Positions 1-15,297 of a stretch of DNA of 15,297 bases are shown here, in pieces. The notes beneath the pieces were generated by a model. The model saw only the letters and a list, made by a program, of their open reading frames with translations, had not been told where the DNA came from and searched no databases. Both the position numbers and the translations under genes were made by a program. Each line of letters begins with the position of its first letter. Within the stretch, counting starts at the first letter, position 1. Source of the DNA: Paramicrosporidium saccamoebae KSL3 (taxonomy: Eukaryota; Fungi; Cryptomycota); NCBI GenBank assembly GCA_002794465.1, contig MTSL01000134.1, positions 1 to 15,297 of the forward strand, written 5' to 3'.

Positions 1-2
1 AA

Positions 3-2204
3 CAAGAGATTATTCCAATTTTAGAAGCTGATGATCTAGGGCGTCTTGAGTCTCTTTCAGCGGATCTGCGTGATGCAGTGCTTGATCCATTCTATTTGGC
101 TGAATTTGATGCCGTCAATCTTGCAAGCACTCTGGCAGATTTGAGAGTGTTTTCCAGATACGACTTGGATCTGCCAAAGCTTGGGGCCGTGCGGATCATG
201 AAATTGCTGATAGACAAGAATATTGCCTTCCAGTGCAACATGAATCGTATAGTGCAGAAAGCAAAACCCGAGGTTTTTCAGCTCTTGATTGATGAGGAAA
301 TATGGACGACGAATAAGAATGCGAATATTGAAGTTGCCAATGCAATCCGAGAGAAAGATCAAGAATACTTGCAGCGTCTCCTTGAGACGCTCAAAGTGAT
401 ACCTGACGAGGATTGCATCGAGTTATTAATCTATAATCGCAATTCAGATGCCTTCAAATGGATAAAGTCCACCCATCCCAACTGGACGCTTGATCAGAAA
501 CTGGTTGATAGATTCGTGCAAGGTGGATCAGGAATCATCTTGGAATGGCTCGACTCTCTCAATCTCGACTTGCTTCAACTAAGCGAAACTGTCTTGGATG
601 ATGCATTTCAAAAAAGGCATTTCCGTGTTCTCGAATGGCTTTTGAAAAAGAGCCAGCGCGATGGGACGCACAAGTTTCCATTGGAATGGACGTGGCAACA
701 AGAAGACATTGCTGTTATCGTTAGAGAAGAGTGTGTACAACTTTTGGAATGGTATGGGACCATCAATCCTGGCTGGAAGTTGAGCGAAGCAAACATTGCG
801 TTTGCGGTTACTTGGGGACTTTTGTCTATTCTGGAAGGGCATGCTCGTCAAAATCCTGATTGGACCTTGAACCCAGCCGCAATCGACGTTGCCATTAGGT
901 TAGGATATTTGCCTATTTTGATGTGGCACGCTGACAGAGTTCCAAGCTGGGTCTTGCAGCAAGCTGGTATTGATAGTGTCGCTGCGCGAGGGTACGTGCA
1001 CATTTTGGAGTGGAATGATTCCTTGAATCGCGCAGCAATTATGCCGAGCGCAGATGCGCTGAAACAGGCATATGAACACGGGCACTTGGAGCTCCTCGAA
1101 TGGTTCCTGATGAAATATCCCGACCAGGTTCTAACATTCCGACCCGAGTGGGCGTTGAGTGAGAAAGACATTCAAGCTATCATTGAACAAGGATACTTGC
1201 ACATTATCTTGTGGCACCTCTCTATCAATCCTAACTGGACACCAAGTGAAGAGCATATTGACACTGCTATCGAGAATGGACATTTGCTCGCTCTGGTGCA
1301 GTGTCTCCCCACTGATCTTGCACTGCCTTTACCAAGCGTATATCAACTTGATAGGATGTTCACAGAGGAAAGAGTCAATGATTTCGAATGGTTCTTTTCT
1401 TCCAATCGTGAATGGATTTTACCGCAAGAAACCATTGACGCTGCCAGTAAAGACGGATATCATAAAGTTTTGAGATGGTATGCCCGGATGAGGCCTGACA
1501 TGCTAAAGCCCAAAGTAGGTAAACTTATGGATTCTGGCACGAACGAAACTTTGGGAATTATAACTTTGGAATGGTTCCTGGAAACGTTCCACCATGGTGA
1601 TTTAGAATCGTTCTGCCCGAATTGGAGGTTGAACGCTGAGAATGTCACTACTGCTATAACGAATGGGTGTATGTATGTTTTGAAATGGTATGCAATCGGA
1701 AACCCTGAGTGGAAATTGGGGGAACGCGGCATTACTGCTGCAATCCAACATGACCGCCTGTTAATTTTGAAGTGGTTCGCGGACATGGAGCCTAACTGGA
1801 CGATGAGTCAAGATAACATTGATACCGTCGTGCTGTATGGACATGGGCACATTTTGAGATGGTATTTCACCACCAATCGTCCAATGCTTCTACCAAGCCC
1901 AAATTCGTTGAGCCGGGCTCTCTTTAGATTTCCATCGTACAAAACCCTCGACTGCTACACCCACACGCGCCGTGACTGGGAGGTAAATCAAGAGCACATT
2001 GATGATGCTACGAAATACGGACAGTTGCAAGTTTTGGAATGGTATGACCGTGTCATGCCCAACAGTATCAGACCAAGCGATGAGGCACTAATCTCGGCTC
2101 GTGAGGCTGGCCACGAAAATGTCATCGTATGGCATGTAAAGAAGCATTGCGAAAAAAGCATGATTTTATTGCTGACTCTCATAAAATCGCTTGAGATACA
2201 GTAG
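3..2204 (+). CDS. Array copy 1 (5'-truncated by window): Trp-rich ankyrin-like repeat protein, presumably secreted like its paralogs
   Basis: The frame is open from base 3 (QEIIPILEADDLGRLESLSADLRDAVLDPFY...) to TAG at 2202-2204. The listed 78 start is an internal GTG. Colinear with copies 2-4. Repeats of consensus W-x-L-x4-I-D-x-A-x3-G-x-L-x-I-L-x-W-x5-P-x. Confidence 0.9.
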   Translation, partial: QEIIPILEADDLGRLESLSADLRDAVLDPFYLAEFDAVNLASTLADLRVFSRYDLDLPKLGAVRIMKLLIDKNIAFQCNMNRIVQKAKPEVFQLLIDEEIWTTNKNANIEVANAIREKDQEYLQRLLETLKVIPDEDCIELLIYNRNSDAFKWIKSTHPNWTLDQKLVDRFVQGGSGIILEWLDSLNLDLLQLSETVLDDAFQKRHFRVLEWLLKKSQRDGTHKFPLEWTWQQEDIAVIVREECVQLLEWYGTINPGWKLSEANIAFAVTWGLLSILEGHARQNPDWTLNPAAIDVAIRLGYLPILMWHADRVPSWVLQQAGIDSVAARGYVHILEWNDSLNRAAIMPSADALKQAYEHGHLELLEWFLMKYPDQVLTFRPEWALSEKDIQAIIEQGYLHIILWHLSINPNWTPSEEHIDTAIENGHLLALVQCLPTDLALPLPSVYQLDRMFTEERVNDFEWFFSSNREWILPQETIDAASKDGYHKVLRWYARMRPDMLKPKVGKLMDSGTNETLGIITLEWFLETFHHGDLESFCPNWRLNAENVTTAITNGCMYVLKWYAIGNPEWKLGERGITAAIQHDRLLILKWFADMEPNWTMSQDNIDTVVLYGHGHILRWYFTTNRPMLLPSPNSLSRALFRFPSYKTLDCYTHTRRDWEVNQEHIDDATKYGQLQVLEWYDRVMPNSIRPSDEALISAREAGHENVIVWHVKKHCEKSMILLLTLIKSLEIQ

Positions 2205-2620
2205 CCCTTATACTATTCCACAGTATATAAAGTGATTGGCAGATTCGTGACCAACCATTTATTAAAGGCTGCGAAATGTATAGTGGGATCCCTGTTGATG
2301 GATGAGCTCGCTTTTATTAAAGTATATGGCTCCTTTATAGGCAGCTATTTTTAATAGGTGATCGGACTGAACTGAGGCCAAGTAAATGTGTCCGTAACTG
2401 GCATATTGTAAAATATTCAAACTGTGGCGACCAATAAAGGGAGCACGATTTTAATCAGTCTTAATTATGACCTTTTGTCAGCTCGACAGTTACATAGTCC
2501 CACTGGTAGCAGGAGCGCTCACTCTCGTCCAACTTAGGTCAACAACCACGACCAAGTCAGCAATTCACCCGAACTACCGTTTGCTAGTGATGAGTCAGAG
2601 TTAGTGCCCCTGCCCTCGCA

Positions 2621-2702
2621 CGCCTATATAAAAGCAGTAGCGGAGTTTATTGGGCGACTGACATCTATCCTCGCCTATAATACAGCCGGGGCAGCGACTA
2701 TT
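2621..2702 (+). promoter_or_regulatory. Putative core promoter of copy 2 (TATA-like elements + conserved 14-mer)
   Basis: CGCCTATATAAAA at 2621, TAGCGGAGTTTATT at 2638-2651, and a second CGCCTATAATACAG at 2672. The block is conserved upstream of copies 3 and 4. Confidence 0.55.
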
Positions 2703-2743
2703 CACGGCAATTAATTGACTACGCAACGCTAGCACTGGTAGCC

Positions 2744-5242
2744 ATGCGTCTATTACGCGCTATGTTTTATCTACCCTTTTTTCTCAGACCTATCATCGGT
2801 TCAAGCCACATTAATTTGAACGAAATGACTGAGGAAGAACTATACAGATACGCAACTAATCCGAACCGTGATGCTGATACGTTCGCATCGATTGTGAGAG
2901 TAGCCAGAGAGAATAAGTATACCATGTTCCTCGAAAATATATCTATCATGCCAAATGTGTCGGCTGAGGATCGTGATAACTCTTTTCAAGACTGGCGTAT
3001 TTTCCAATGGTCCCCTGAGCCACGTTCAAATCTGAGCCAAGACGAGGAGAAAAAAGCCATTCCCCTTCTAGAAGCTGATGATCCAAAGTGTCTTGAGTCC
3101 CTTTCAGCAGAGTTGCTTAATGCGGTGCTGGACCCATTCTACTTGGCTGAATTTGATGCCGTCAATCTTGCAAACACTATGGCAGATTTGAGAGTGTTCT
3201 CCAGATACGACTTGGATCTGCCAAAGCTTGGGGCCGTGCGGATCATGAAATTACTGATAGACAAGAATATTGCGTTCCAGTGCGACATTTACCGCACAGT
3301 TCGGGATGGAAATGCCAAAGTCCTTCAATTCTTGGTTGATGAGAGGGTATGGAAGGCCGATGAGAATGTAAATCGTGAAGTTGTCCTTGCAATCTACGGG
3401 GGAGAACAAGAATACTTGCAGCGCCTTCTTGAGATGCTCAAAGTGGTGCCTAACACAGAGTGCGTCAAGTTACTGATTGAGAAACAAAATTCAGATGCTT
3501 TCAGATGGATAAAGTCGGCTCATCCCGACTGGAAGATCAATCAGGCACTGGTCGATTACATGGTACAACGTGGATCAGGAGACGATTTAGAATGGTGTGA
3601 CTCTCTTAATCTCGACTTGCTCCAACTAAACGAAACCATCCTAGATGACGCATTTCAAAGAGGTCATTTCCGTGTTCTCGAATGGCTTTTGAAAAAGAGT
3701 CAGCGCGATGGAGTGTACGAGTTCCCATTGGAATGGACGTGGCAACAAAACGACATTGATACTATCGTTGAACAAGGATGTGTACAGCTCGTAGAATGGT
3801 ACGGGAAGATCAGTCCTGGCTGGAATCTGAATGAAACGAACATTGCGTCTGCGGTTGAACAAGGGCTCTTGATTATTTTGGAAGACTACGCTAGTAAGCA
3901 TCCTGGCTGGGCCCTACAACAAACTGAAATCGAGATTGCCATTAAAGGAGGACATTTGCACATTTTAAGGTGGCACGCCGAGAGAATTCCGAGCTGGGTT
4001 TTGCAGCAAGCTGAAATCGATAGTGCTGCTGCGCGAGGACATATGCACATTATAAAATGGAACATTTCCTTTAACAGCGCAACGCTTTTACCTAGCGCAA
4101 ATGCGCTTAATCAGGCACGCGTATATGAGTACTTGGAGCCCCTTGAATGGTTCCTGGTAAAGTGTCCTGATCAGATACTAGCATTCCGACCCGAGTGGGC
4201 GTTGAGTGAGAGAGACATTCAGGCTGCCATTGAGCAAGGATACTTGCACATTATCTTGTGGCACCTCTCTGTCAATCCTCACTGGGCACCAGGTGAAATG
4301 GAAATTGATGCTGCTATCGAGAATGGACATTTACAAGCTCTAGTTCAATGTCTCTCTGATAATCTTGCGCTGCCTCTACCAAGTGTGTATCAACTTGAAA
4401 AGATGTTTGCGGAGGAAAGAGCCGGCGATCTCGAATGGCTTTTCTCTTGCGGTCGTGAATGGATTTTATCGCAAGAAACCATTGATGCTGCTACTGAAGG
4501 CGGATATCATGAAATCTTGAGATGGTACGCCCGAAAAATGCCCAACATGCTAAAACCCAACATAGCTACGCTTGCGGATTTTGAAACAGCCGAAAATTCG
4601 GCAATGTTAACTTTCGAATGGTTCCTGGAAATGTTCTACCACGACAGTTTACAGTTGTTTAAACCTGACTGGGAGTTGGACACGACTTTTGCAGCCATGG
4701 ATGGATGTATATACACTTTAAAATGCCACGCAATCCATTACCCATTCCGGAAATTGGGGGAACGCGAAATCACCGCTGCGATCGAGCATGACCACCTGCC
4801 AATCTTGGAGTGGTGGGCAGACAGGGAGCCTAACTGGGTGATGAGTCAAAATGACATTGAGGCTGCCGTTTTGTATGGCCATGCACACATTTTGAAGTGG
4901 TACCTTGAAACCAACCGCCGAATGCCTCTGCCAGGCCCAAAAGTGTTGAGTCGGGTTCTTCTTAGGTTTCCATCATACAAAACCCTCGACTGCTACACCC
5001 ATACGCGCCGTGACTGGGAGGTAAATCAAGAGTGCATCGATGATGCTACTAAAAATGGACAATTGCGGGCTTTGGAATGGTATGATCGTGTCATGCCCAA
5101 CAGCGTCAGACCAAGCGATGAGGCACTGAGCTTGGCCCATGATGCTGGTCACAATAACACTATCGTGTGGTGTGTAAAAAAATATCACTCAGAAGGCATG
5201 ATTTTTTTGCTGACTCTTATGAATTCGCTCAAGATACAGTAG
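2744..5242 (+). CDS. Array copy 2: putative secreted ankyrin-like repeat protein, 832 aa
   Basis: gccATG start, hydrophobic N-terminus MRLLRAMFYLPFFLRPIIGS (signal-peptide-like), uninterrupted ORF, same repeat architecture, ends LLTLMNSLKIQ*. Confidence 0.92.
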   Translation: MRLLRAMFYLPFFLRPIIGSSHINLNEMTEEELYRYATNPNRDADTFASIVRVARENKYTMFLENISIMPNVSAEDRDNSFQDWRIFQWSPEPRSNLSQDEEKKAIPLLEADDPKCLESLSAELLNAVLDPFYLAEFDAVNLANTMADLRVFSRYDLDLPKLGAVRIMKLLIDKNIAFQCDIYRTVRDGNAKVLQFLVDERVWKADENVNREVVLAIYGGEQEYLQRLLEMLKVVPNTECVKLLIEKQNSDAFRWIKSAHPDWKINQALVDYMVQRGSGDDLEWCDSLNLDLLQLNETILDDAFQRGHFRVLEWLLKKSQRDGVYEFPLEWTWQQNDIDTIVEQGCVQLVEWYGKISPGWNLNETNIASAVEQGLLIILEDYASKHPGWALQQTEIEIAIKGGHLHILRWHAERIPSWVLQQAEIDSAAARGHMHIIKWNISFNSATLLPSANALNQARVYEYLEPLEWFLVKCPDQILAFRPEWALSERDIQAAIEQGYLHIILWHLSVNPHWAPGEMEIDAAIENGHLQALVQCLSDNLALPLPSVYQLEKMFAEERAGDLEWLFSCGREWILSQETIDAATEGGYHEILRWYARKMPNMLKPNIATLADFETAENSAMLTFEWFLEMFYHDSLQLFKPDWELDTTFAAMDGCIYTLKCHAIHYPFRKLGEREITAAIEHDHLPILEWWADREPNWVMSQNDIEAAVLYGHAHILKWYLETNRRMPLPGPKVLSRVLLRFPSYKTLDCYTHTRRDWEVNQECIDDATKNGQLRALEWYDRVMPNSVRPSDEALSLAHDAGHNNTIVWCVKKYHSEGMIFLLTLMNSLKIQ

Positions 5243-5637
5243 CCCTTATACTATTATGCGGTATATAAAGTGAGTGGCAGGTCCTAGGTGAGCCATTTCA
5301 TAAAGATTGTGGGGTTTGTAGCAAGACCATTTACCGTGGATTTGTAAATATAATGTACTCTTTCGCAAAGGTACTCGAAATGACACAAGGTCAAGCAAAC
5401 ATGTTTATAAAGGGCTAATCACGAGAGATTCAGGCCGTGGTGGCTGATGGAAAATATGCAATCCCCGTCAGTTGTAATTAAAACTCTTTGGTTCCAGATC
5501 GGCCGCCTCGTATTTAAATTGGTGAGTGGGATTCCTCTCGCTTAACGCAGGTCAATGACCATGGCCAAACCAATGCTTTACTCGAATTTTTGTTTGCTAG
5601 CGATGCACCAGAAACAATCACCTCGTCCCCCCCCCCA

Positions 5638-5720
5638 CGCCTATATAATACAGTAGCGGAGTTTATTAAATAACTGACATTTATCCTCGTCTATAACACG
5701 GCCGGGGCGGCGACTATATC
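5638..5720 (+). promoter_or_regulatory. Putative core promoter of copy 3
   Basis: CGCCTATATAATACAG, TAGCGGAGTTTATT (5654-5667), CGTCTATAACACGG and GGGGCGGCGACTATATC, preceded by a C10 run (5627-5636). Confidence 0.55.
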
Positions 5721-5741
5721 TGTGACAATTAATTGGCAACC

Positions 5742-8249
5742 ATGCATCTATTGCGAGCTGTGTTTTATCTGTTCTTTCTTTTAAAATCCATCATTGGTTC
5801 AAGTCGCACTAATTTGGACAAGATGACCGAGGAAGAGCTATACAGATACGCAACCAATCCGAACCGTGAGGCTGGTAAATTCGCATCAATTGTGAGAGTG
5901 GCGACCAAAAAAAAGTATACCATGTTCCTCGAAAATGTTTCCATCATGCCAAATCTGCAGACTGCAGAACGTGACAGTTATTTTAGGAACCGACGTAACC
6001 TTCAGTGGCGCCCTGAACCTCGTTTAGTCTTGAGCCAAGACGCGGAACAAGAGATTATTCCAATTTTAGAAGCTGATGATCCATGGCGTCTTGAGTCTCT
6101 TTCAGCGGATCTACGTAATGCGGTGCTTGATCCATTCTATTTGGCTGAATTTGATGCTGTCAATCTTGCAAGCACTCTGGCAGATTTGAGAGTGTTTTCC
6201 AGATACGACTTGGATCTGCCAAAGCTTGGGGCTGTGCGGATCATTAAATTGTTAATAGACAAGGACATTACGTTTCAGTGTGACATTTGTCTTATAGTTC
6301 ATGAAGGAAATGACAAAACCATCCAGTTCCTGATCGATGAGAAAGTATGGAGGGTGGACAAGAATGCAAACATTGAAGTCGCCAATGCAATCCGAGAGAA
6401 TAAACAAAAATACTTGCAGCGTCTCCTTGAGACGTTCAAAGTGGTACCTGACGAGCATTGCATCAAGTTATTAATCTATAATCGCAATTCAGATGCTTTC
6501 AAATGGATAAAATCGGCTTATCCCGACTGGAGGATAAATCAAGAGATAGTCGATCAATTAGTGCGATATGGAATGGGAGACCTGATGGAATGGTGCGACT
6601 CTCTCAATCTCGACTTGCTTCAACCAAGCGAAACCGTCCTAGAGGACGCATTTCAAAAAAGACATTTTCGCGTTCTCGAATGGCTTTTGAAAAAGAGTCA
6701 TCGTGATGAACTGTACAAGTTCCCATTGGAATGGACATGGCAACAAAATGAGATTGATATGATCGTGAAAAAAGAATGTACACAACTCTTAGAATGGTAC
6801 AGAACAATCAATCCTGGCTGGAAGTTGAGTGAAGGAAACATTGCGTTTGCGGCTAATTGGGGACTTTTGTCCATTCTGGAAGGGCATGCCGATCAAAATC
6901 CTGATTGGACTTTGCAGCAGGCTGAAATTAGCCTTGCTGTTATGGAAGGACATTTGGAAATTTTAAAGTGGCACGCCAATAGAGCTCCTGATTGGGTTCT
7001 GCAGCAAGCTGAAATTGACAGTGCCACTGCGCGAGGACATGTGCACATTCTGAAATGGAATGATTCTTTAAGCAGAACAACGATTATACCTAGCGCAGAT
7101 GCGCTGAATCAGGCACGTGAATATGGGAATTTAAAGTCCCTTGAATGGTTTCTGTTAAAGTATCCTGATCAGATATTAGCGTTCCGACCCGAGTGGAGGT
7201 TGAATGAGGACAAAATTCGAGCCGCCATTGAGAAAGGATATTTGCAAATCATATTGTGGCACGTCTCTAGCAACCCTAACTGGACACCCAATGAAGTGCA
7301 TATTGACACTGCTGTCAAGACTGGAAACTTGCACACTCTAATCCAGTGTTTCTCTGCTAGTCTTGCGCTGCCTCTACCAAGCATATCGCAACTCGAAGCA
7401 ATGCTTGCAGAGGATGAAATAAATAACCTCGAATGGTTGTTCTCTGTCAGCCGTGAATGGATTTTACCACAAGAAAAGATTGATACTGCCACTAGAAGTG
7501 GGAATCATAAAGTTTTGAACTGGTATGCACGCATAAAGCCTAGCATGCTGAAACCCAGCGTGGGTGAACTCGTGGGTCTTTACACGGACAAAACTTTGGG
7601 AATTCTGACTTTGGAATGGTTCCTGGAAAGGTTCCACCGTGATAGTTCAAAGTCGTTTTATCCTACTTGGAAGTTGGATCGGCAGGACATTTTTATTGCT
7701 GCCACGAACGGATGTATAAACGTTTTAAAATGGCAGGCAGGCAGTCAGCCTGACTGGAAATTGAGCGAAAGCAACCTTAGTGCTGCAATTCGACATGGAC
7801 GCTTATTAGTCTTGGAATGGTTTTCAAACCTGAATCCTCCTTGGATGATGAGTCAGGATAATATTGATGATGCCGTTGAGTGTGGTCAGGGACACATTTT
7901 GAAATGGTATTTTGAAACCAATCGCCCGATGCTTCTACCAAGCCCACATATATTGGACCGGGTTCTCCTCAGGTTCCCATCATACAGAACCCTCGACTTT
8001 TACACCTCGACACGTTGTGACTGGGCGGTGAGTCAAAATCACATTGACTCTGCCACTATAAATGGACAGTTGCGGGCTTTGGAATGGTACGATCGCGTCA
8101 TGCCCAATAGTATCAAACCAAGTCTAGCTGCACTAAACGCGGCTAGGAATTCTGGCCATAGCAACCTCATCGCATGGTGTATAAGAAAACACCACTCAGA
8201 AGGCGCAATTTTCTTGCTGACCCTTATGAATTCTCTCAAGATACAGTAG
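5742..8249 (+). CDS. Array copy 3: putative secreted ankyrin-like repeat protein, 835 aa
   Basis: The first ATG (accATG, 5742) aligns with the copy 2 start; the track's 5733 start is a TTG. N-terminus MHLLRAVFYLFFLLKSIIGS, same architecture. Confidence 0.92.
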   Translation: MHLLRAVFYLFFLLKSIIGSSRTNLDKMTEEELYRYATNPNREAGKFASIVRVATKKKYTMFLENVSIMPNLQTAERDSYFRNRRNLQWRPEPRLVLSQDAEQEIIPILEADDPWRLESLSADLRNAVLDPFYLAEFDAVNLASTLADLRVFSRYDLDLPKLGAVRIIKLLIDKDITFQCDICLIVHEGNDKTIQFLIDEKVWRVDKNANIEVANAIRENKQKYLQRLLETFKVVPDEHCIKLLIYNRNSDAFKWIKSAYPDWRINQEIVDQLVRYGMGDLMEWCDSLNLDLLQPSETVLEDAFQKRHFRVLEWLLKKSHRDELYKFPLEWTWQQNEIDMIVKKECTQLLEWYRTINPGWKLSEGNIAFAANWGLLSILEGHADQNPDWTLQQAEISLAVMEGHLEILKWHANRAPDWVLQQAEIDSATARGHVHILKWNDSLSRTTIIPSADALNQAREYGNLKSLEWFLLKYPDQILAFRPEWRLNEDKIRAAIEKGYLQIILWHVSSNPNWTPNEVHIDTAVKTGNLHTLIQCFSASLALPLPSISQLEAMLAEDEINNLEWLFSVSREWILPQEKIDTATRSGNHKVLNWYARIKPSMLKPSVGELVGLYTDKTLGILTLEWFLERFHRDSSKSFYPTWKLDRQDIFIAATNGCINVLKWQAGSQPDWKLSESNLSAAIRHGRLLVLEWFSNLNPPWMMSQDNIDDAVECGQGHILKWYFETNRPMLLPSPHILDRVLLRFPSYRTLDFYTSTRCDWAVSQNHIDSATINGQLRALEWYDRVMPNSIKPSLAALNAARNSGHSNLIAWCIRKHHSEGAIFLLTLMNSLKIQ

Positions 8250-8642
8250 CCCTTACACTATTATGCGGTATATAAAGTAATTGGCAGATCCATGATGAAC
8301 GATTGTATAAAGATTGTGGGGTTTGCAGCAAGACCACTTACCGTGGGTTCATAGATATAACGCACTCCTTCGCAAAAGTGCACAAAGTGACACGAGGTCA
8401 AGCAAACATGTTTACAAAGGGCTAATTACGAGAGATTCAGACTGTGGTGGCTGATGGAAAATATGCAATTCTCGTCAGTTTTAATTAAAGCTCTTTGTTA
8501 TCAGATCGGCCACCTCACACTTCAATTGGTAAGTGAGATGCCTCTCGCTTAGCGCAGGTCGATGGCCATGACCGAGCCAATAGCTCAACTAAAGTATTGT
8601 GAGTTAGCAATGAGACATAACCAATGTCCCTGTTCTTTCATA

Positions 8643-8730
8643 CCTGTAATAAAACAATAGCGGAGTTTATTAGAGGGCCTCGTGACAGCAATCTTCGTTT
8701 ATACTACAACCGGGGAGCGGCGACCATATC
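8643..8730 (+). promoter_or_regulatory. Putative core promoter of copy 4 (TATA-like elements more degenerate)
   Basis: TAGCGGAGTTTATT (8658-8671) is retained exactly and GCGGCGACCATATC is retained. The TATA-like boxes have changed to CCTGTAATAAAA and CGTTTATACTACA. Confidence 0.45.
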
Positions 8731-8777
8731 TGTGTCAGCCTATTAATATTAATTACGCAACATTAGCGCCGATAGTC

Positions 8778-11285
8778 ATGCATCTGTCACGCACTGCATT
8801 TTGTCTGCTCTTTTTGCTCGAACCCGTCATTGGTGCAAGTCACATTGGTTTGAGTAGCGGGATGACCGAAGAGGAGTTATACCGATACGCCACCGACCCA
8901 AACCGTGAGGCCGGTACATTTATACCAATTGTGAGAGTAGCGACCAAGAGAAATTATGACGTGGTGCTCGAGAATATTTCCATCATGCCAAATTTACAGA
9001 CTTTGGAGCGTGACAGCTATTTTAGGGACCGACGTAACTTGAAATGGTATCCTGAGCCACGCTCAAATTTAAGTCGAGAGGCGGAACAAGAGATTATTCC
9101 AATTTTAGAAGCTGATGATCTAGGGCGTCTTGAGTCCCTTTCAGCGGATCTACGTAATGCGGTGCTTGATCCATTCTATTTGGCTGAATTTGATGCTGTC
9201 AATCTTGCAAGCACTCTGGCAGATTTGAGAGTGTTTTCCAGATACGACTTGGATCTGCCAAAGCTTGGGGCCGTGCGGATCATGAAATTGCTGATAGACA
9301 AGAATATTGCGTTTCAGTGTGACATTTGTCTTATAGTTCATGAAGGAAATGACGAGGTTCTCCAGCTCTTGATCGATGAGAAAGTCTGGAAGGTGGACAA
9401 GGATGCGAACAATGAGATTGTCTATGCCATCTGGAAGGGAAAGCAAGAATACTTGCATCATCTCCTTGAGACACTCAAAGTGATACCTGAAGAGGATTGC
9501 ATCAAGTTATTAATCAAAAAGCAAAATTCAGATGCTTTCAAATGGATAAAATCAGCCCATCCCGATTGGAAAATTAATCAGGAACTAGTCGATCAATTCG
9601 TGCAACATGGATCGGGAAACGTTTTGGAATGGTGCGACTCTCTCAATCTCGACTTGCTTCAACTAAGCGAAACCGTACTAGCTGATTCATTTCAAAATGG
9701 AAACTTTCGTGTTCTCGAATGGCTCCTGAAGAAGAGTCAGCGCGATAAGGTATACAATTTTCCACTGGAATGGACGTGGCAACAAAACGAGATTGATACT
9801 ATCGTGAAGCAAGGATGTGCGCAACTCTTAGAATGGCACAGGACGATCAATCCTGGCTGGAAGTTGAGTGACGAAAACATAGTGTCTGCGGCCAATTGTG
9901 GGCTTCTGGCTATTCTGGAAGGGCACGCCAAACAGTTTCCTGGCTGGGCCCTGCAGCAACCTGAAATCGACACTGTCATTGCGAGTGGACATTTGCCCAT
10001 CCTGATGTGGCACGCCAGTAATAATCCTGGCTGGGCCCTTCAGCAAGCTGAAATTGACAGTGCCACTGCGCATGGGCATGTGAACATTTTAAACTGGAAC
10101 GACTCTTTGAACGGCGCAACAATTATGCCTAGCACAGAGGCACTGAATCAGGCACGTGAATATGGGAATTTAAAGTCTCTCGAATGGTTCCTGACGAAAT
10201 ATCCTGATCAGATACTAATATTCCGGCCCCAATGGACGTTGAGTGATAGAGGCATTCACATTGCCATTAAATATGGCCACTCACACATTGTACTGTGGCA
10301 CGTCTCTGCTAATCCTGGTTGGATACCAAGTGAAGTGCATATTGATACTGCTCTCGTGACCGGAAACCTGCACGCTTTGGTACAACATCTCCCTGATAAT
10401 CTTGCATTACCTCTACCAAGCATTTTTCAACTTGAAAAAGTGTTCAAAGAGGAAAAAACCAATGAGCTCGAATGGTTTCTCTCTGCCGGTCGTGAATGGA
10501 CTCTACCGCAAGAAAAGATTAATGCTGCAACTAAAGGCGGACATTATCAAATCTTGAAATGGTATTCTCAAGTAAAGCCCAACATGCTGAAACCCAGCGT
10601 GGATACACTTATGGATCGGCACACTGACAAAATTTTGAGAATCCAAACTTTGGAATGGTTCCTGGGCACGTTTCACCATGAGGACTTGGGTTCGTTCGAA
10701 CCTGACTGGAACTTGAATGAGTATAAAATCTCTATTGCTATTGCGAATCAATGTGTGTATGTTTTGAAATGGCATACTATTAGAAACGCTGAATGGACAC
10801 TGAGCGAAACTAGCATTAGCAATGCAATTCAGCAAGGTCATTTACTCATTGTGGAGTGGTATGCGGAGATCAATCGTGACTGGACGATGAGTCAGGCTGA
10901 CATTGACAATGTCATTGTTTACGGGCACGGCCACATGTTGAGATGGTATCTCGATACCAATCGCCTAGCACTTTTGCCAAGCCCGGCTACATTGAGTCGG
11001 GTTCTTCTTAGACATCCATCTTACAAAACTCTCGATTGTTATGCTTCTGTGCGTCGCGACTGGACACTAAGTCAAAATTACATTGATGATGCTACTAGAA
11101 ATGGACAGTTGCGGGCTTTGGAATGGTATGACCGTCTCATGCCCAACAGGATCCAGCCAAGCTCCGGCGCACTAAACTTGGCTTATAGGGCTGGCCATAA
11201 AGCTATCATCACATGGTATTTGAAGAAGGATTGCTCAAAAGGTGTTATTTTATTGCTGACCCTTATACAATCGCTTGAGATATAG
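8778..11285 (+). CDS. Array copy 4 (terminal copy): putative secreted ankyrin-like repeat protein, 835 aa
   Basis: The ATG at 8778 aligns with the starts of copies 2 and 3; the track's 8682 start is a GTG inside the conserved promoter block. N-terminus MHLSRTAFCLLFLLEPVIGA. It ends LEI* because the CAG of the other copies is TAG here. Confidence 0.92.
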   Translation: MHLSRTAFCLLFLLEPVIGASHIGLSSGMTEEELYRYATDPNREAGTFIPIVRVATKRNYDVVLENISIMPNLQTLERDSYFRDRRNLKWYPEPRSNLSREAEQEIIPILEADDLGRLESLSADLRNAVLDPFYLAEFDAVNLASTLADLRVFSRYDLDLPKLGAVRIMKLLIDKNIAFQCDICLIVHEGNDEVLQLLIDEKVWKVDKDANNEIVYAIWKGKQEYLHHLLETLKVIPEEDCIKLLIKKQNSDAFKWIKSAHPDWKINQELVDQFVQHGSGNVLEWCDSLNLDLLQLSETVLADSFQNGNFRVLEWLLKKSQRDKVYNFPLEWTWQQNEIDTIVKQGCAQLLEWHRTINPGWKLSDENIVSAANCGLLAILEGHAKQFPGWALQQPEIDTVIASGHLPILMWHASNNPGWALQQAEIDSATAHGHVNILNWNDSLNGATIMPSTEALNQAREYGNLKSLEWFLTKYPDQILIFRPQWTLSDRGIHIAIKYGHSHIVLWHVSANPGWIPSEVHIDTALVTGNLHALVQHLPDNLALPLPSIFQLEKVFKEEKTNELEWFLSAGREWTLPQEKINAATKGGHYQILKWYSQVKPNMLKPSVDTLMDRHTDKILRIQTLEWFLGTFHHEDLGSFEPDWNLNEYKISIAIANQCVYVLKWHTIRNAEWTLSETSISNAIQQGHLLIVEWYAEINRDWTMSQADIDNVIVYGHGHMLRWYLDTNRLALLPSPATLSRVLLRHPSYKTLDCYASVRRDWTLSQNYIDDATRNGQLRALEWYDRLMPNRIQPSSGALNLAYRAGHKAIITWYLKKDCSKGVILLLTLIQSLEI

Positions 11286-11888
11286 TAACTTGTATTTCAC
11301 GACTCACAAAACGATCGGCAACTTTGAGGTTTGAAGCATGACCCCTTACTACTGATTTGTAAATATAATGTATTCTTTTTCACAAGGGTGATCTGGGCAG
11401 GTGTAAAAGGTCTTTAATATATCGCGGAGCTGACTATAAAATCAAGGTTTGTATTGACCAATTGGTAGCTATGGGATTATATCTGTATTGTGAGACTGTT
11501 ATTCATCCACAGGATACACAATTGCTCGGATATATCATCTCTGGAATTTGAAGCCTCCCTCTATTAATATAACGCTGACATTGGACCGATTAAGTAATTA
11601 ATACACCAACTAATGCGCTAACTAATATGCCGACCAATAATATTGCCTCCGATCTTTTCTCCGAGGGTATAAAGTCCCCTACCCTTGCAACTTTCGCAAG
11701 CCCTTTCATTCCAGACCGTGCTGGTCCATCTATCAAATGGTAAGTACAACTTGATGCGACTGGATGATGAAACACTTACTCTGCTTCCTGATGAGTATAC
11801 CTTTTGGAATTCCTCGTTTCTGACAACTCGCATCAAGCCCCATTCTTTGGATACTCATTAATAGGTGCGATGATTGAACATTACTACG

Positions 11889-11954
11889 AACACTAACACT
11901 AACACTAACACTAACACGAACACGAACACGAATGCGAATGCGAGTGCAAATGAC
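11889..11954. repeat. Compound hexanucleotide microsatellite
   Basis: (AACACT)4(AACACG)3(AATGCG)2 AGTGCA AATGAC in unbroken 6-bp register. Confidence 0.9.
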
Positions 11955-12348
11955 TTGTCAAGAGGTAAGAGTCGAGGGCAATGACGATTTGGTCACACCT
12001 TTTATGAACACCATGATTCAATTTACCTCACATGCATCACCATCTGAGCCCATTGTTGCCCTTCATTTACTTATATCATAGAAAGCTCAGCTTTGCTCGC
12101 TTTTAAAGAGGTAATGTATCTATGCGGGAGATGATTATTCTACATTTCAGTTCTGCTTCTGAACCAAAATACTCTGAAGAGAAAGTGTTTATGATCCCGC
12201 CCATCGTGAACTTTTTCTAATTCCCTAGGCCTCTGAATCCAACTGCTTCGGAATGTACAAAATGTGGGAGATGATGAGATTTATTCCGTGTTTCAGCTGA
12301 GTCATGATTACAATTTACACTCTGATCCCTTCTGAGTGTATTCGGATG

Positions 12349-12954
12349 TTAATCGTCTAGTAGCGCGCTTGAAGCATTCCTCGCCGCTCTTGCTGCCTTC
12401 CTAGCCCCTCTGGGAACATTTATTTCTTTTTCTGAGAGTATCAGAAAATCATCCCAGTTGAATTTGTAATAAAATGTTGTTTGTCCCAGTGCCTCGGCCA
12501 TTTTTGGCTCTTTCAGATGGGTAAAGTCGAATGCGTCTTGCAATGCGTCCTGAATGACACTTGTCTGGGCTTTCATTCGTACCAGATATTTGGCAACCTT
12601 CCACTCTGAACTCTCAAACACTCTGCATCTCGCACAACTGGTCCGTAAATCGTCGTCGTCATAGACAGTCAGAGTTCCGGCATTACAGAATGTGTGCACG
12701 CGAGACTTTTTGGAGCGTCGCAAGGCCAACAAACAGCCCGGATACACGCTGTTCTCCATAGACCTACGACAAGCTTCGTCTTCAAGCGACAATAAACATG
12801 GCATCAGGCTGTATTCGTGGCCATTTTTGACAATCTGATGAGCCCACACTGTCTACATATAAATTGCTAACCGATGAGATTGTACTTTGTCAGTTCCCAC
12901 TGCGAGCTTTGTCATTAAGAATAATCTCATGCCGATCCCTAATGCGGCAATCAT
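12349..12954 (-). CDS. Small protein resembling the C-terminal Zn-ribbon OB fold (DBD-C) of RPA1; model join of 12954..12886 and 12852..12349, ~190 aa, start codon uncertain
   Basis: Track ORFs 12853..13035 and 12349..12849 are in the same frame, separated by one TAG that is the acceptor of a 33-nt GT-AG intron. The protein has ENSVYPGC-x16-C-x16-CARC...YLVRM...AEALGQ, which resembles human RPA70 ENCMYQAC-x4-C-x13-CEKC...ILSVNI...AEAILGQ (recalled, aligned by eye). Confidence 0.6.
12853..12885 (-). other. Predicted 33-nt spliceosomal intron (phase 0)
   Basis: Minus strand reads GTACAATCTCATCGGTTAGCAATTTATATGTAG. Removing it deletes the in-frame stop and gives ...GTDK|TVWAHQ... Confidence 0.6.
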
Positions 12955-13050
12955 GCAAAGAGTGATGCAGGACGGTGAGGAGGAGTAATTTTTCGATAGC
13001 CATACAGAGTCGAGTGACAAAGTGGGTGGCAACACCCCTACTACACAACA
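12955..13050. promoter_or_regulatory. Candidate bidirectional promoter between the OB-fold gene and MCM9
   Basis: Only 96 bp separate the two predicted divergent ATGs. No specific motif was recognised. Confidence 0.4.
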
Positions 13051-15096
13051 ATGTTAGCGACAGCAGACGCTAGGTGTGCCGAGGAGGACCAGCTGGTCAC
13101 ATTTCTACTTCAAGAGAATGCGGTAGAGATTGAAGAGTTAATGCAGCTCCCACACGACGGACGGCACTTGAGCCTGGAAGTAAAGTAACACTTCCTCATT
13201 TGGCTGACTGATAGTTTGCTGACAATGCTGAACCGACACGCGAAGCTGGCCACGGTAGTTCTGAATGACCCTGCAACAATCATTCCAATGGCAGAGAGAG
13301 CAATATTGCGGACACAAACGCGAATGATTGCGGACGGGTCGACATTGCGTCAACGCGAGCAGATACACGCGCGTCTCACCGGCGTGCCGATGCTGAAGGG
13401 GATATATTTCAATCGAATTCCAGGAGTGGAAGCCATGGGACGTCTGATAGCAGTGCGAGGCACAGTTACCCGCCTAAGTCCAGTGCGGATGGCGGACCAA
13501 AGTCGCACCTTTCAATGCTGCAAATGCCGAACTCCCATGGAGGCATTCCCCGACGACTTTCAGTTTGGCGTCATTGCAAAGCCGACACTGTGCACAGCAA
13601 TCAATGATGATCAGCGATGCGGCGCAACCAAGTTTGAGCCGTTCCGGGAGGAGGGCGTAGTAGGAAAGGAAGATTACCAGGAAATCCGAATCCAAGAACT
13701 GACGTCATGGCTGGACATTGGGGCCGTGCCAAGGACCTTGACAGTAGTCTTGCGACATGACTTGGTGGACCAGTGCAAGGCGGGCGATGAGGTGCAAATC
13801 ACAGGATGGATGATTGCGCGTTGGAAACCCGTAAAGACGGGATTGCGATGCGAGAACGAGTTTTGTTTGATTGCCAATAATGTGGCTGTTGCTAATCGGA
13901 GTGCATTCGGGAAAATGGACATGGGCAACTTTTCAGCAGTCTTCTGGAATGCTCATCGAGAGGTGCCGCTGCGTGGAAGGGACCTACTGATTAGTAGCTT
14001 CTGTCCACAGATTTACGGATTACATTTGGTAAAGTTGGCGGTTCTACTTACCATCATTGGTGGGACATTGGAGGATGAAGATGGACGAAGGAGACATCGG
14101 AAAGAGGGTCACATTTTGTTAGTAGGCGATCCTGGGACGGCAAAATCCCAATTCTTAGTGACTGCAGCCAAGATTAGTCCACGCTCAGTAATGACCACCG
14201 GATCAGGCTCCACCAATGCGGGACTGACCGTGGCCGCAGTGAAAGATGCTGGAGAGTGGCAATTAGAGGCAGGTGCATTGGTTTTGGCTGACGGCGGCGT
14301 GTGTTGCATTGACGAGTTTAGTGCTCTCCGCGGAAATGATCGCACTTCGATCCATGAGGCTATGGAACAGCAAACGTTGAGCGTGGCAAAGGCCGGTTTG
14401 GTGTGTAAACTGCAGACGCGCTGTTCCATTATTGCCGCCTGCAACTCCAAAGGCCGATTCGAAGAAGGCGAACTGCTCTCTGCCAATGTGGCCTTGGCCA
14501 GTCCCCTTCTCAGCCGCTTCGATTTGATCATTGTGATGGCAGACAAAAGGTCAGTCGACTGGGATCGATCCCTTTCCACCTCCATTCTCGAGACGTCCAG
14601 CAAAGGCGGCACCCGTCGTAAACAAAATGAGAGGACGGGCGTCGATTTTGAGACACTAAAGGCCTATGTGAACTTTGTTCGCAATGAACTGCGTCCGACC
14701 ATGGCGCATGGGGCTCGGGTGGTGCTGGGGAAATATTATCAGCTGCAACGAAGGGCGGATCTCCGCGATGTTGCTCGCACCACAATTAGACTATTGGAAA
14801 GTCTTATCCGTCTGGCCCAGGCCCATGCCAAACTGATGTGTCGAGAGAGCGTTGAGGTTTCCGATGCCATCTGGTCGATTGTCCTAATGGAAACATCCCT
14901 TGCCACACAAAGTCTCTTGGGGATGAGACCCGATGTATATGCCGTGCCGGCCGAATCGCCTACTGCGCAATACGACCAATACGAAACGACCATTCTCACA
15001 AAGTTGGAGATTAACCTAAAAGTCATTGACACTGCCCACCTGAAGCTTGATGCCGAGGCTGATGAGATTTTGTGTTCATGGAAACCCACCCAATAA
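13051..15096 (+). CDS. MCM9: DNA helicase MCM9 (MCM8-9 complex subunit); join(13051..13184,13215..15096), 671 aa
   Basis: Zn finger CCKC...C...C, Walker A GDPGTAKSQFL, TTGSGSTNAGLTVAAVKDAGEWQLEAGALVLAD, Walker B CCIDEF followed by DRTSIHEAMEQQTLSVAKAGLVCKL, Arg finger SRFD, and TTIRLLESLIRLA.AHA.LM are all MCM9-type. Exon 1 (MLATADARCAEEDQLVTFLL...HLSLEV) splices to give EVNLLTM, matching the MCM9 VVNAMTL segment. Confidence 0.93.
13185..13214 (+). other. 30-nt spliceosomal intron in MCM9 (phase 2)
   Basis: GTAACACTTCCTCATTTGGCTGACTGATAG: GT donor, GCTGAC branch-point-like site, TAG acceptor. It contains the in-frame TAA (13186-13188), and its removal restores the frame and homology. Confidence 0.85.
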
Positions 15097-15097
15097 A
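15092..15097 (+). terminator. Possible polyadenylation signal overlapping the MCM9 stop codon
   Basis: AATAAA overlaps CAA-TAA and is followed by AT-rich sequence. Confidence 0.3.
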
Positions 15098-15185
15098 TTC
15101 AGTGTTTGTATAAATTATAAGAAAGGGCCTTGACGAATTATTAACAACTTGGCGACAAAGAGTCTGTTGAATAGCGATAATTCAC

Positions 15186-15297
15186 CTATAATCTTGAATC
15201 AATAGTCCAGTATCGATATTCTAAAACTGATAATCTAGAATCGATAATCTAGAATCGGTAATCTAGGATCGATAATCTAGAATTGATAATCTATTGC
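15186..15297. repeat. 14-bp tandem repeat (consensus CGATAATCTAGAAT), 8 units in register, running to the window end
   Basis: Units start at 15186, 15200, 15214 (degenerate), 15228, 15242, 15256, 15270 and 15284. Confidence 0.92.

Follow-up and report, generated by a model that had tools for sequence, protein, structure and literature searches.

What kind of protein is encoded by the tandem array of long open reading frames (ORFs) that opens contig MTSL01000134.1 of Paramicrosporidium saccamoebae, and what might an intracellular parasite use it for? The window analyzed here comprises bases 1–15297 of this contig (15,297 bp; assembly GCA_002794465.1), with 0 mismatches over 14411 bases compared, and its first base is also the first base of the contig. 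A preliminary description of the locus, made from the DNA alone, had proposed a family of secreted ankyrin-like solenoid proteins of a sort typical of intracellular parasites. The source organism is in fact an obligate intracellular parasite of amoebae: P. saccamoebae (Rozellomycota, accession MTSL00000000) lives within the amoeba nucleus (PMC5701793). We report that the array represents an unnamed, mostly unannotated, and lineage-restricted family, in which a predicted signal peptide and a novel N-terminal module (N-module) are joined to an ankyrin solenoid built of short units.

Four long ORFs (copies c1–c4) fill bases 3–11285, all on the plus strand, arranged head to tail and with 0 internal stops (Table 1). 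The four intact intronless paralogs of about 830 amino acids (aa) described initially are thus complete in three cases (832, 835, and 835 aa), whereas c1 (at least 733 aa) is cut. The start of c2 is the first possible start codon past an upstream stop, and c3 and c4 start at homologous ATGs. Since it is the contig itself, and not merely the window, that begins there, the 5′ end of c1 is missing from the assembly, and the array may therefore exceed four copies. The gene table of the GenBank record has no model for c1–c3, and the only model within the array, the 132-aa protein P0128, corresponds to the last 132 codons of c4; possibly, the array was masked as repeat DNA during annotation. The window contains no virus and no virus-like element, and no gene in it is broken, c1 merely ending at the contig edge.

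The four paralogs share 63–67% protein identity, with 350 invariant columns. The three spacers (499–539 bp) are 61–78% identical among themselves, as compared with approximately 40% identity to the DNA following c4. Hence the duplicated unit is the whole stretch of about 3 kb, regulatory DNA included. The ratio of nonsynonymous to synonymous substitution rates (dN/dS, Nei–Gojobori) is 0.33–0.38 in all six paralog pairs, at pairwise dS of 0.54–0.75, and the most conserved block, with dN of 0.03, is formed by protein residues ~121–180, within the N-module. The paralogs are old, intact, and real genes under purifying selection, a result far from chance expectation; pseudogenes or non-coding repeats are ruled out by the intact frames and the dN/dS values.

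The N-termini of c2–c4 consist of Met, a basic residue at position 5, 9–12 hydrophobic residues, a charged residue, and the segment (I/V)IG(S/A)S, i.e., the signal-peptide-like start noted initially is present in all three copies where it can be seen. The layout is kept, with differing residues, in distant members of the family at 25–30% identity (P0130, P0131, P0133, P0202, P0257, and the protein encoded at L009:7728), and on the same heuristic reading the n-h-c arrangement is present in all members whose N-terminus is complete. Retention of the layout while the residues differ is how functional signal peptides would be expected to behave.

The signal-peptide-like segment is followed by the helical N-module of about 210 aa (residue 23 to approximately 235), which when folded alone reaches a predicted local distance difference test score (pLDDT) of 79. 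A Pfam scan of the N-module yielded no match even at E ≤ 10, and a Foldseek search with the N-module alone against PDB gave none at E ≤ 1e-3, the nearest structures being DARPins (E of 0.17). The repeats occupy residues ~236–815 and follow the motif W-x-L-x-x-x-x-I-D-x-A-x-x-x-G-H-L-x-I-L-x-W-x-x-x-x-x-P-x-W. The two-helix repeats of the preliminary description are thus recovered, while their count is somewhat higher than the approximately 18 given there: 19 units are anchored on the recurrent Trp, mostly 29–30 aa apart, and the AlphaFold2 model has about 20 helix pairs. The last ~15 aa form a conserved hydrophobic tail of the MIFLLTLMNSLKIQ type, modelled as a terminal helix with low confidence. 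We rejected the idea that the C-terminus carries a glycosylphosphatidylinositol anchor or a tail anchor, as the hydrophobic run is only 8–9 residues long, lacks a polar spacer, and is followed by a polar stretch.

Several kinds of evidence place the repeats within the ankyrin superfamily. Pfam matches are marginal: Ank_4 scores 27.6, 26.4, and 26.1 bits in c2, c3, and c4 against a cut-off of 22.7, falling just below it in c1 (21.5 bits), and Ank_5 scores 30.5 bits in c4 against a cut-off of 27. A profile of the four copies, searched exhaustively by HMMER against 1.84 billion representatives, produced 1524 matches at E ≤ 1e-3. Next after the true family (1e-27 to 1e-20) come proteins that strongly match Pfam ankyrin models; e.g., P0134, P0139, P0140, P0142, and P0144 match the profile at 1e-27 to 1e-21, each with a strong Ank_2 or Ank_4 domain. 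These second-tier proteins carry the same short unit, of the ‘AIDxAAxNGHxxVLxWF’ type. Searches with the c2 sequence yielded no match among PDB chains at E ≤ 1 and only three weak ankyrin matches in a word-index protein search. The label DUF3447, attached in UniRef to the family member PSACC_01907, found no match in the four window proteins (E ≤ 1) or in P0127, P0129, and P0130 (E ≤ 0.01).

The AlphaFold2 model of c2 (pLDDT 78.8, predicted template modelling score 0.51) consists of helix pairs throughout. In a Foldseek search against PDB, its best match is the 24-repeat domain of ankyrin-B (2.7e-8), with ankyrin-1, NOMPC, the ankyrin domain of latrotoxin, and DARPins among the further top matches; the probability is 1.0 for ankyrin-B, ankyrin-1, NOMPC, and DARPins. 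The viral structure library gave 201 matches at E ≤ 1e-3, and all named proteins among the 50 best are giant-virus ankyrin or F-box proteins at 11–18% identity, mostly from amoeba-infecting viruses (Tupanvirus, Pandoravirus, Mimivirus, Pithovirus, Cedratvirus). The initial impressions of an ankyrin-like alpha-solenoid and of a giant-virus flavor of the repeats are thus both borne out. At that, the repeats are not canonical ankyrins: the unit is 29–30 rather than 33 aa, the TPLH motif is lacking, and the loops, where canonical units have a beta-hairpin finger, are short. On the combined evidence of profiles and model, the family belongs to the ankyrin superfamily as a divergent branch with short units and a predicted alpha-solenoid fold.

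To see how the paralogs vary along the repeat, 19 units were put in register and the six paralog pairs pooled, with bootstrap over units. The ratio of nonsynonymous to synonymous differences per site (pN/pS) is 0.24 (0.16–0.33) at scaffold positions, namely, the two Trp, Leu −2 and −19, Ile −14, Ala −11, Gly −7, and Pro +6, and 0.90 (0.72–1.13) at positions −20, −16, −15, −12, −9, and −8, a contrast that is descriptive only, since the same data served to pick the variable positions. The highest single value, 1.67, is observed at position −12. Five of the six variable positions (−16 to −8) are spaced as i, i+1, i+4, i+7, and i+8, i.e., they lie on one face of helix 1. The pattern agrees with the fixed scaffold and variable faces envisaged in the preliminary description; relaxed constraint is also compatible with it.

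The spread of the family turned out to be narrow. In the HMMER search, proteins bearing the N-module were found only in P. saccamoebae and in environmental (metagenome/SRA) contigs, so that the true relatives are lineage-restricted. The former has at least 11 genes at seven loci, two of them being fragments without the N-module. In addition to the four window copies, these are single genes at the loci L005 and L006, the tandem pair PSACC_00888 and PSACC_00889 (L009), PSACC_00226, PSACC_03337, and PSACC_00042; PSACC_03337 and PSACC_00042 match in the repeats only. PSACC_01907 (in L006), which bears the N-module, is located on the same contig as the array, approximately 8 kb beyond the window. 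The environmental members come from several JGI contigs (two were traced, both to sample 3300042203) and one Logan contig. The architecture of a signal-peptide-like start, N-module, and repeats is constant, with the repeat number ranging from 2 to about 20 and the length from approximately 315 to 835 aa; a similar hydrophobic tail closes the shorter members that were checked. In the deposited model of P0130 (443 aa), 85 codons of repeats are spliced out of an uninterrupted 528-aa ORF. As anticipated, no family name exists: there is no Pfam family for the N-module, and the GenBank products are called ‘hypothetical protein.’

Three environmental contigs (L001–L003; JGI 3300036987, 3300037657, and SRR27341044) encode the DNA helicase MCM9, the non-family neighbor of the array, at 63–65% identity. 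In L001 and L002, the gene order downstream of MCM9 (WD40, BRCA2, MUS81, and an RRM protein) is preserved, and the MCM9-syntenic relative contigs carry acyl-CoA dehydrogenase and NDH2 upstream. The three contigs probably originate from uncultured relatives of Paramicrosporidium. A tblastn search with 13 family proteins gave no match to them in the DNA fetched around MCM9. A pattern scan of metagenomes matched 75 stretches, of which 0 were confirmed by tblastn, and a literature search for Paramicrosporidium and ankyrin, or for microsporidian ankyrin families with signal peptides, found nothing relevant.

As for the genomic setting of the other members, the PSACC_00888/PSACC_00889 pair comes within about 430 bp of a contig end, and the window array likewise stands at a contig end. 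The member at L005:10001–11587 lies amid a series of five called genes for GH47 alpha-mannosidases (L005 7739–16050). Two adjacent genes with clear signal-peptide-like starts and very long poly-Ser and Arg-rich tracts (L006 7782–9555, on MTSL01000134.1, approximately 9–11 kb beyond the window) adjoin the short family member PSACC_01907.

We consider it somewhat probable that the family members are proteins of the secretory pathway, destined for the parasite surface or the nucleoplasm of the host, whose ankyrin solenoids serve as paralog-specific binding surfaces. The tandem array was built by repeated duplication of the ~3-kb unit, and the family is confined to the Paramicrosporidium lineage. 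In this scheme, each protein would enter the secretory pathway via a cleavable N-terminal signal peptide and then fold as a long solenoid comprising the N-module of ~210 aa, 2 to about 20 helix pairs of 29–30 aa, and a hydrophobic C-terminal capping helix. With the scaffold of Trp, Leu, Ala, Gly, and Pro held constant and the exposed face of helix 1 free to vary between paralogs, each paralog would offer a different binding surface on one frame. The most likely role would then be that of exported or surface-displayed protein binders touching nuclear components of the host amoeba; host nuclear contact is proposed because the parasite grows inside the host nucleus. Export and the host-directed role would follow from a heuristic reading of the N-termini. 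The oligosaccharyltransferase subunit STT3 is encoded on the same contig, which makes ER (endoplasmic reticulum) glycosylation and a secretory route plausible, and N-glycosylation at least possible, in this organism.

A number of observations weigh against this interpretation. The hydrophobic core of the putative signal peptide is short (9–12 aa), with a charged residue right after it. Cys is scarce in the proteins (1.1–1.6%), which also have no enrichment in sequons (3–7 per protein, as compared with shuffled-sequence means of 3.2–5.1) and hence bear no mark of an extracellular protein. The N-x-S sequons that the preliminary description called conserved are present at the places it quoted (N65/66 as NISI, NVSI, and NISI; N440/441/338 as NISF, NDSL, NDSL, and NDSL), but the first site (N65/66) is not retained in the wider relatives, and sequon conservation carries no weight. 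The structure model of c2 rests on a shallow alignment of 15 rows. Its TM-scores (template modelling scores) to solved ankyrins are low globally (0.18–0.24), as expected for long curved solenoids, and PPR10 also scores about 2e-5; therefore, the fold assignment rests on local geometry together with sequence profiles. There is no evidence of positive selection, as dN/dS over whole genes is about 0.35 and even at the most variable positions the average is 0.9, so that the term ‘diversifying,’ used initially, overstates the evidence. Finally, the genome paper (PMC5701793) does not mention ankyrin, secretion, signal peptides, tandem genes, or the family.

The same signal-peptide evidence would apply if the proteins entered the secretory pathway and were retained by the parasite, in the spore wall, polar-filament apparatus, plasma-membrane coat, or ER lumen, the array then reflecting a structural need or gene dosage. 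The conserved N-module and the C-terminal hydrophobic helix could serve assembly or anchoring, the overall constraint is purifying, and the short member adjoins two Ser-rich signal-peptide proteins resembling wall or coat proteins. Structural proteins, however, usually hold their length, whereas members of this family vary from approximately 315 to 835 aa by gain and loss of repeats; moreover, the differences between paralogs are greatest on the exposed helix face, and the syntenic contigs of relatives have no family member in the DNA fetched. On balance, retention appears unlikely to us. We find it a little harder still to believe that the N-terminal stretch is an uncleaved anchor or has no targeting role, the proteins being cytosol-facing scaffolds that underwent a lineage-specific expansion. 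Ankyrin repeats are, as is generally known, overwhelmingly cytosolic, and other early-diverging fungi expand repeat proteins with no link to secretion (PMC8778642); the low Cys content, the absence of sequon enrichment, and a second hydrophobic segment at the C-terminus fit as well. Yet a core of 9–12 aa is too short for a typical anchor, and the small residues SG, GS, or AS suit signal peptidase. The N-terminal layout is kept in members sharing only 25–30% identity, and the C-terminal run spans only 8–9 residues and is modelled as the helix that ends the solenoid.

A further possibility concerns the origin of the family and can hold together with export: the repeat module may have been acquired by horizontal transfer, inside the amoeba host, from a giant virus or from an ankyrin-rich bacterium associated with amoebae, with later fusion to a signal peptide and N-module of the parasite. 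The second-tier matches have the same type of unit (29–30 aa, AIDxAxxxGHxxVLxW), the best viral fold matches all come from amoeba giant viruses, and the GC content at third codon positions in the family is slightly below that of neighboring genes (43–50% vs. 47–58%). This last difference is small, however, and the ranges overlap; identity to any non-family protein is only 12–25%; and the viral library has few ankyrin proteins from other viruses, so the ranking is expected. We regard such a transfer as very improbable.

Table 1. Coordinates of the array, its parts, the neighboring gene, and other family loci. Positions refer to the window unless a locus name is given.
Feature	Position	Strand	Remarks
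Copy 1 (c1)	3..2204	+	At least 733 aa plus stop codon; open from first base, no start codon visible
Spacer 1-2	2205..2743		Part of the duplicated unit; conserved blocks immediately past the stop codon and within 150 bp upstream of the following ATG
Copy 2 (c2)	2744..5242	+	832 aa, complete, intronless; reference for the structure model
c2 aa 1-22, signal-peptide-like	2744..2809	+	MRLLR, hydrophobic run, RPIIGSS; heuristic reading, low-pLDDT N-terminal helix
c2 aa 23-235, family-specific helical N-module	2810..3448	+	
c2 aa 236-815, ~19-20 ankyrin-type helix-pair repeats	3449..5188	+	Modal period 29-30 aa
c2 aa 816-832, conserved hydrophobic C-terminal helix	5189..5239	+	MIFLLTLMNSLKIQ type
Spacer 2-3	5243..5741		Part of the duplicated unit
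Copy 3 (c3)	5742..8249 from ATG	+	835 aa, complete, intronless
Spacer 3-4	8250..8777		Part of the duplicated unit; 78% identity to spacer 2-3
Copy 4 (c4)	8778..11285 from ATG	+	835 aa, complete, intronless
MCM9 DNA helicase	13051..15096	+	Non-family neighbor; one short intron near 5′ end
P0130 locus	L005:10001-11587, MTSL01000095.1		Uninterrupted 528-aa ORF
Short member	L006:10001-10948		Single ORF, 315 aa
Second tandem pair PSACC_00889, PSACC_00888	L009:7728-8888, 9261-10430, MTSL01000068.1		386 and 389 aa, single ORFs

The remainder of the window is occupied by the neighboring gene and a few minor features. Exon 1 of MCM9 (13051–13184) and the main ORF are in one frame, separated by a single TAA. 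A GT...AG intron of 30 nt (13185–13214) would keep the residues LLTMLNRHAK, which align with the relatives P0005 and P0006, while the deposited 659-aa MCM9 implies an intron of 66 nt that on our reading would remove them. A Pfam scan of exon 1 yielded nothing, even at E ≤ 10. Between c4 and MCM9 lies a 1.7-kb gap with a minus-strand ORF of 166 aa (12349–12849), which has no Pfam match (E ≤ 10) and no called gene, and which may be due to chance. A hexanucleotide microsatellite AACACT/ACGAAC with approximately 7–8 copies is found at 11886–11932, and a 14-bp tandem repeat (7.6 copies, 78% matches) at 15188–15293, a short way past the stop codon of MCM9. Blastocystis, suggested as the source by the apparent 30-nt intron of MCM9, was rejected once the contig had been identified; a single TGTTTGTT motif is present, the number expected by chance.

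The family has in common with the ankyrin superfamily (ankyrin-B, ankyrin-1) the stacked helix-turn-helix solenoid, the G-H-L-x-(I/V)-L signature, and the conserved Ala of helix 1. Apart from the 29–30-aa unit, the absence of a TPLH start, and a much shortened hairpin loop, it differs from canonical ankyrins of 33 aa in the Trp that ends helix 2 and recurs in the P-x-W linker, in the signal-peptide-like start, and in having its own N-module. The unit length and motif are the same as in the ‘GHxxVLxWF’ ankyrins of amoeba giant viruses (Mimivirus R837/R840 type, Pandoravirus, Pithovirus, Tupanvirus) and the metagenome proteins P0134, P0139, and P0144. The latter three, unlike the family, have no signal-peptide start, N-module, or C-terminal helix. 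Among the viral matches, several bear the name of F-box proteins, and identity to the family is 12–18%.

In Microsporidia, the sister group, clade-specific families with signal peptides, locally duplicated near chromosome ends, constitute the main host-exposed class (PMC5423893), and members of some large families (NemLGF1/5 and others) reach the host nucleus (Reinke et al. 2017, PMC5423893). The P. saccamoebae family resembles these large families in being clade-specific, in its signal-peptide-like starts, in local duplication and location at chromosome or contig ends, and in belonging to an intracellular parasite. No sequence relationship between them was found, and most of the microsporidian families have no recognizable domain, whereas the family described here is of the ankyrin type. 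Host exposure has been demonstrated for the microsporidian families and is proposed here for that of P. saccamoebae.

Bacterial ankyrin effectors (Legionella, Coxiella, AnkA of Anaplasma, Orientia) are, from general knowledge, alike in concept, being exported binders that in some cases enter the host nucleus, but they use type IV or type I secretion with no Sec signal peptide and have canonical 33-aa units; none was found among the matches of any search made. A bolder proposal, which we treat as speculative and rather doubtful, is that a rozellid exports a repertoire of short-unit ankyrin paralogs into the amoeba nucleoplasm as a Sec-dependent eukaryotic counterpart of bacterial ‘nucleomodulins.’ As its repeats would be of the type that amoeba giant viruses have expanded, three unrelated kinds of amoeba parasites would then have converged on, or exchanged, one scaffold.

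Paramicrosporidium is a basal member of the lineage that led to Microsporidia, and to our knowledge no host-interaction factor is known in it. The family is the first concrete candidate for parasite–host contact in this genus. As most of the array is missing from the gene table of the public record, it has been invisible to proteome-based comparisons. Without export, the locus would amount to no more than a lineage-specific repeat-protein expansion. If the proteins are exported, signal-peptide families grown by local duplication would predate Microsporidia, and a eukaryotic example would be added to the recurrent use of ankyrin solenoids by parasites of amoebae.

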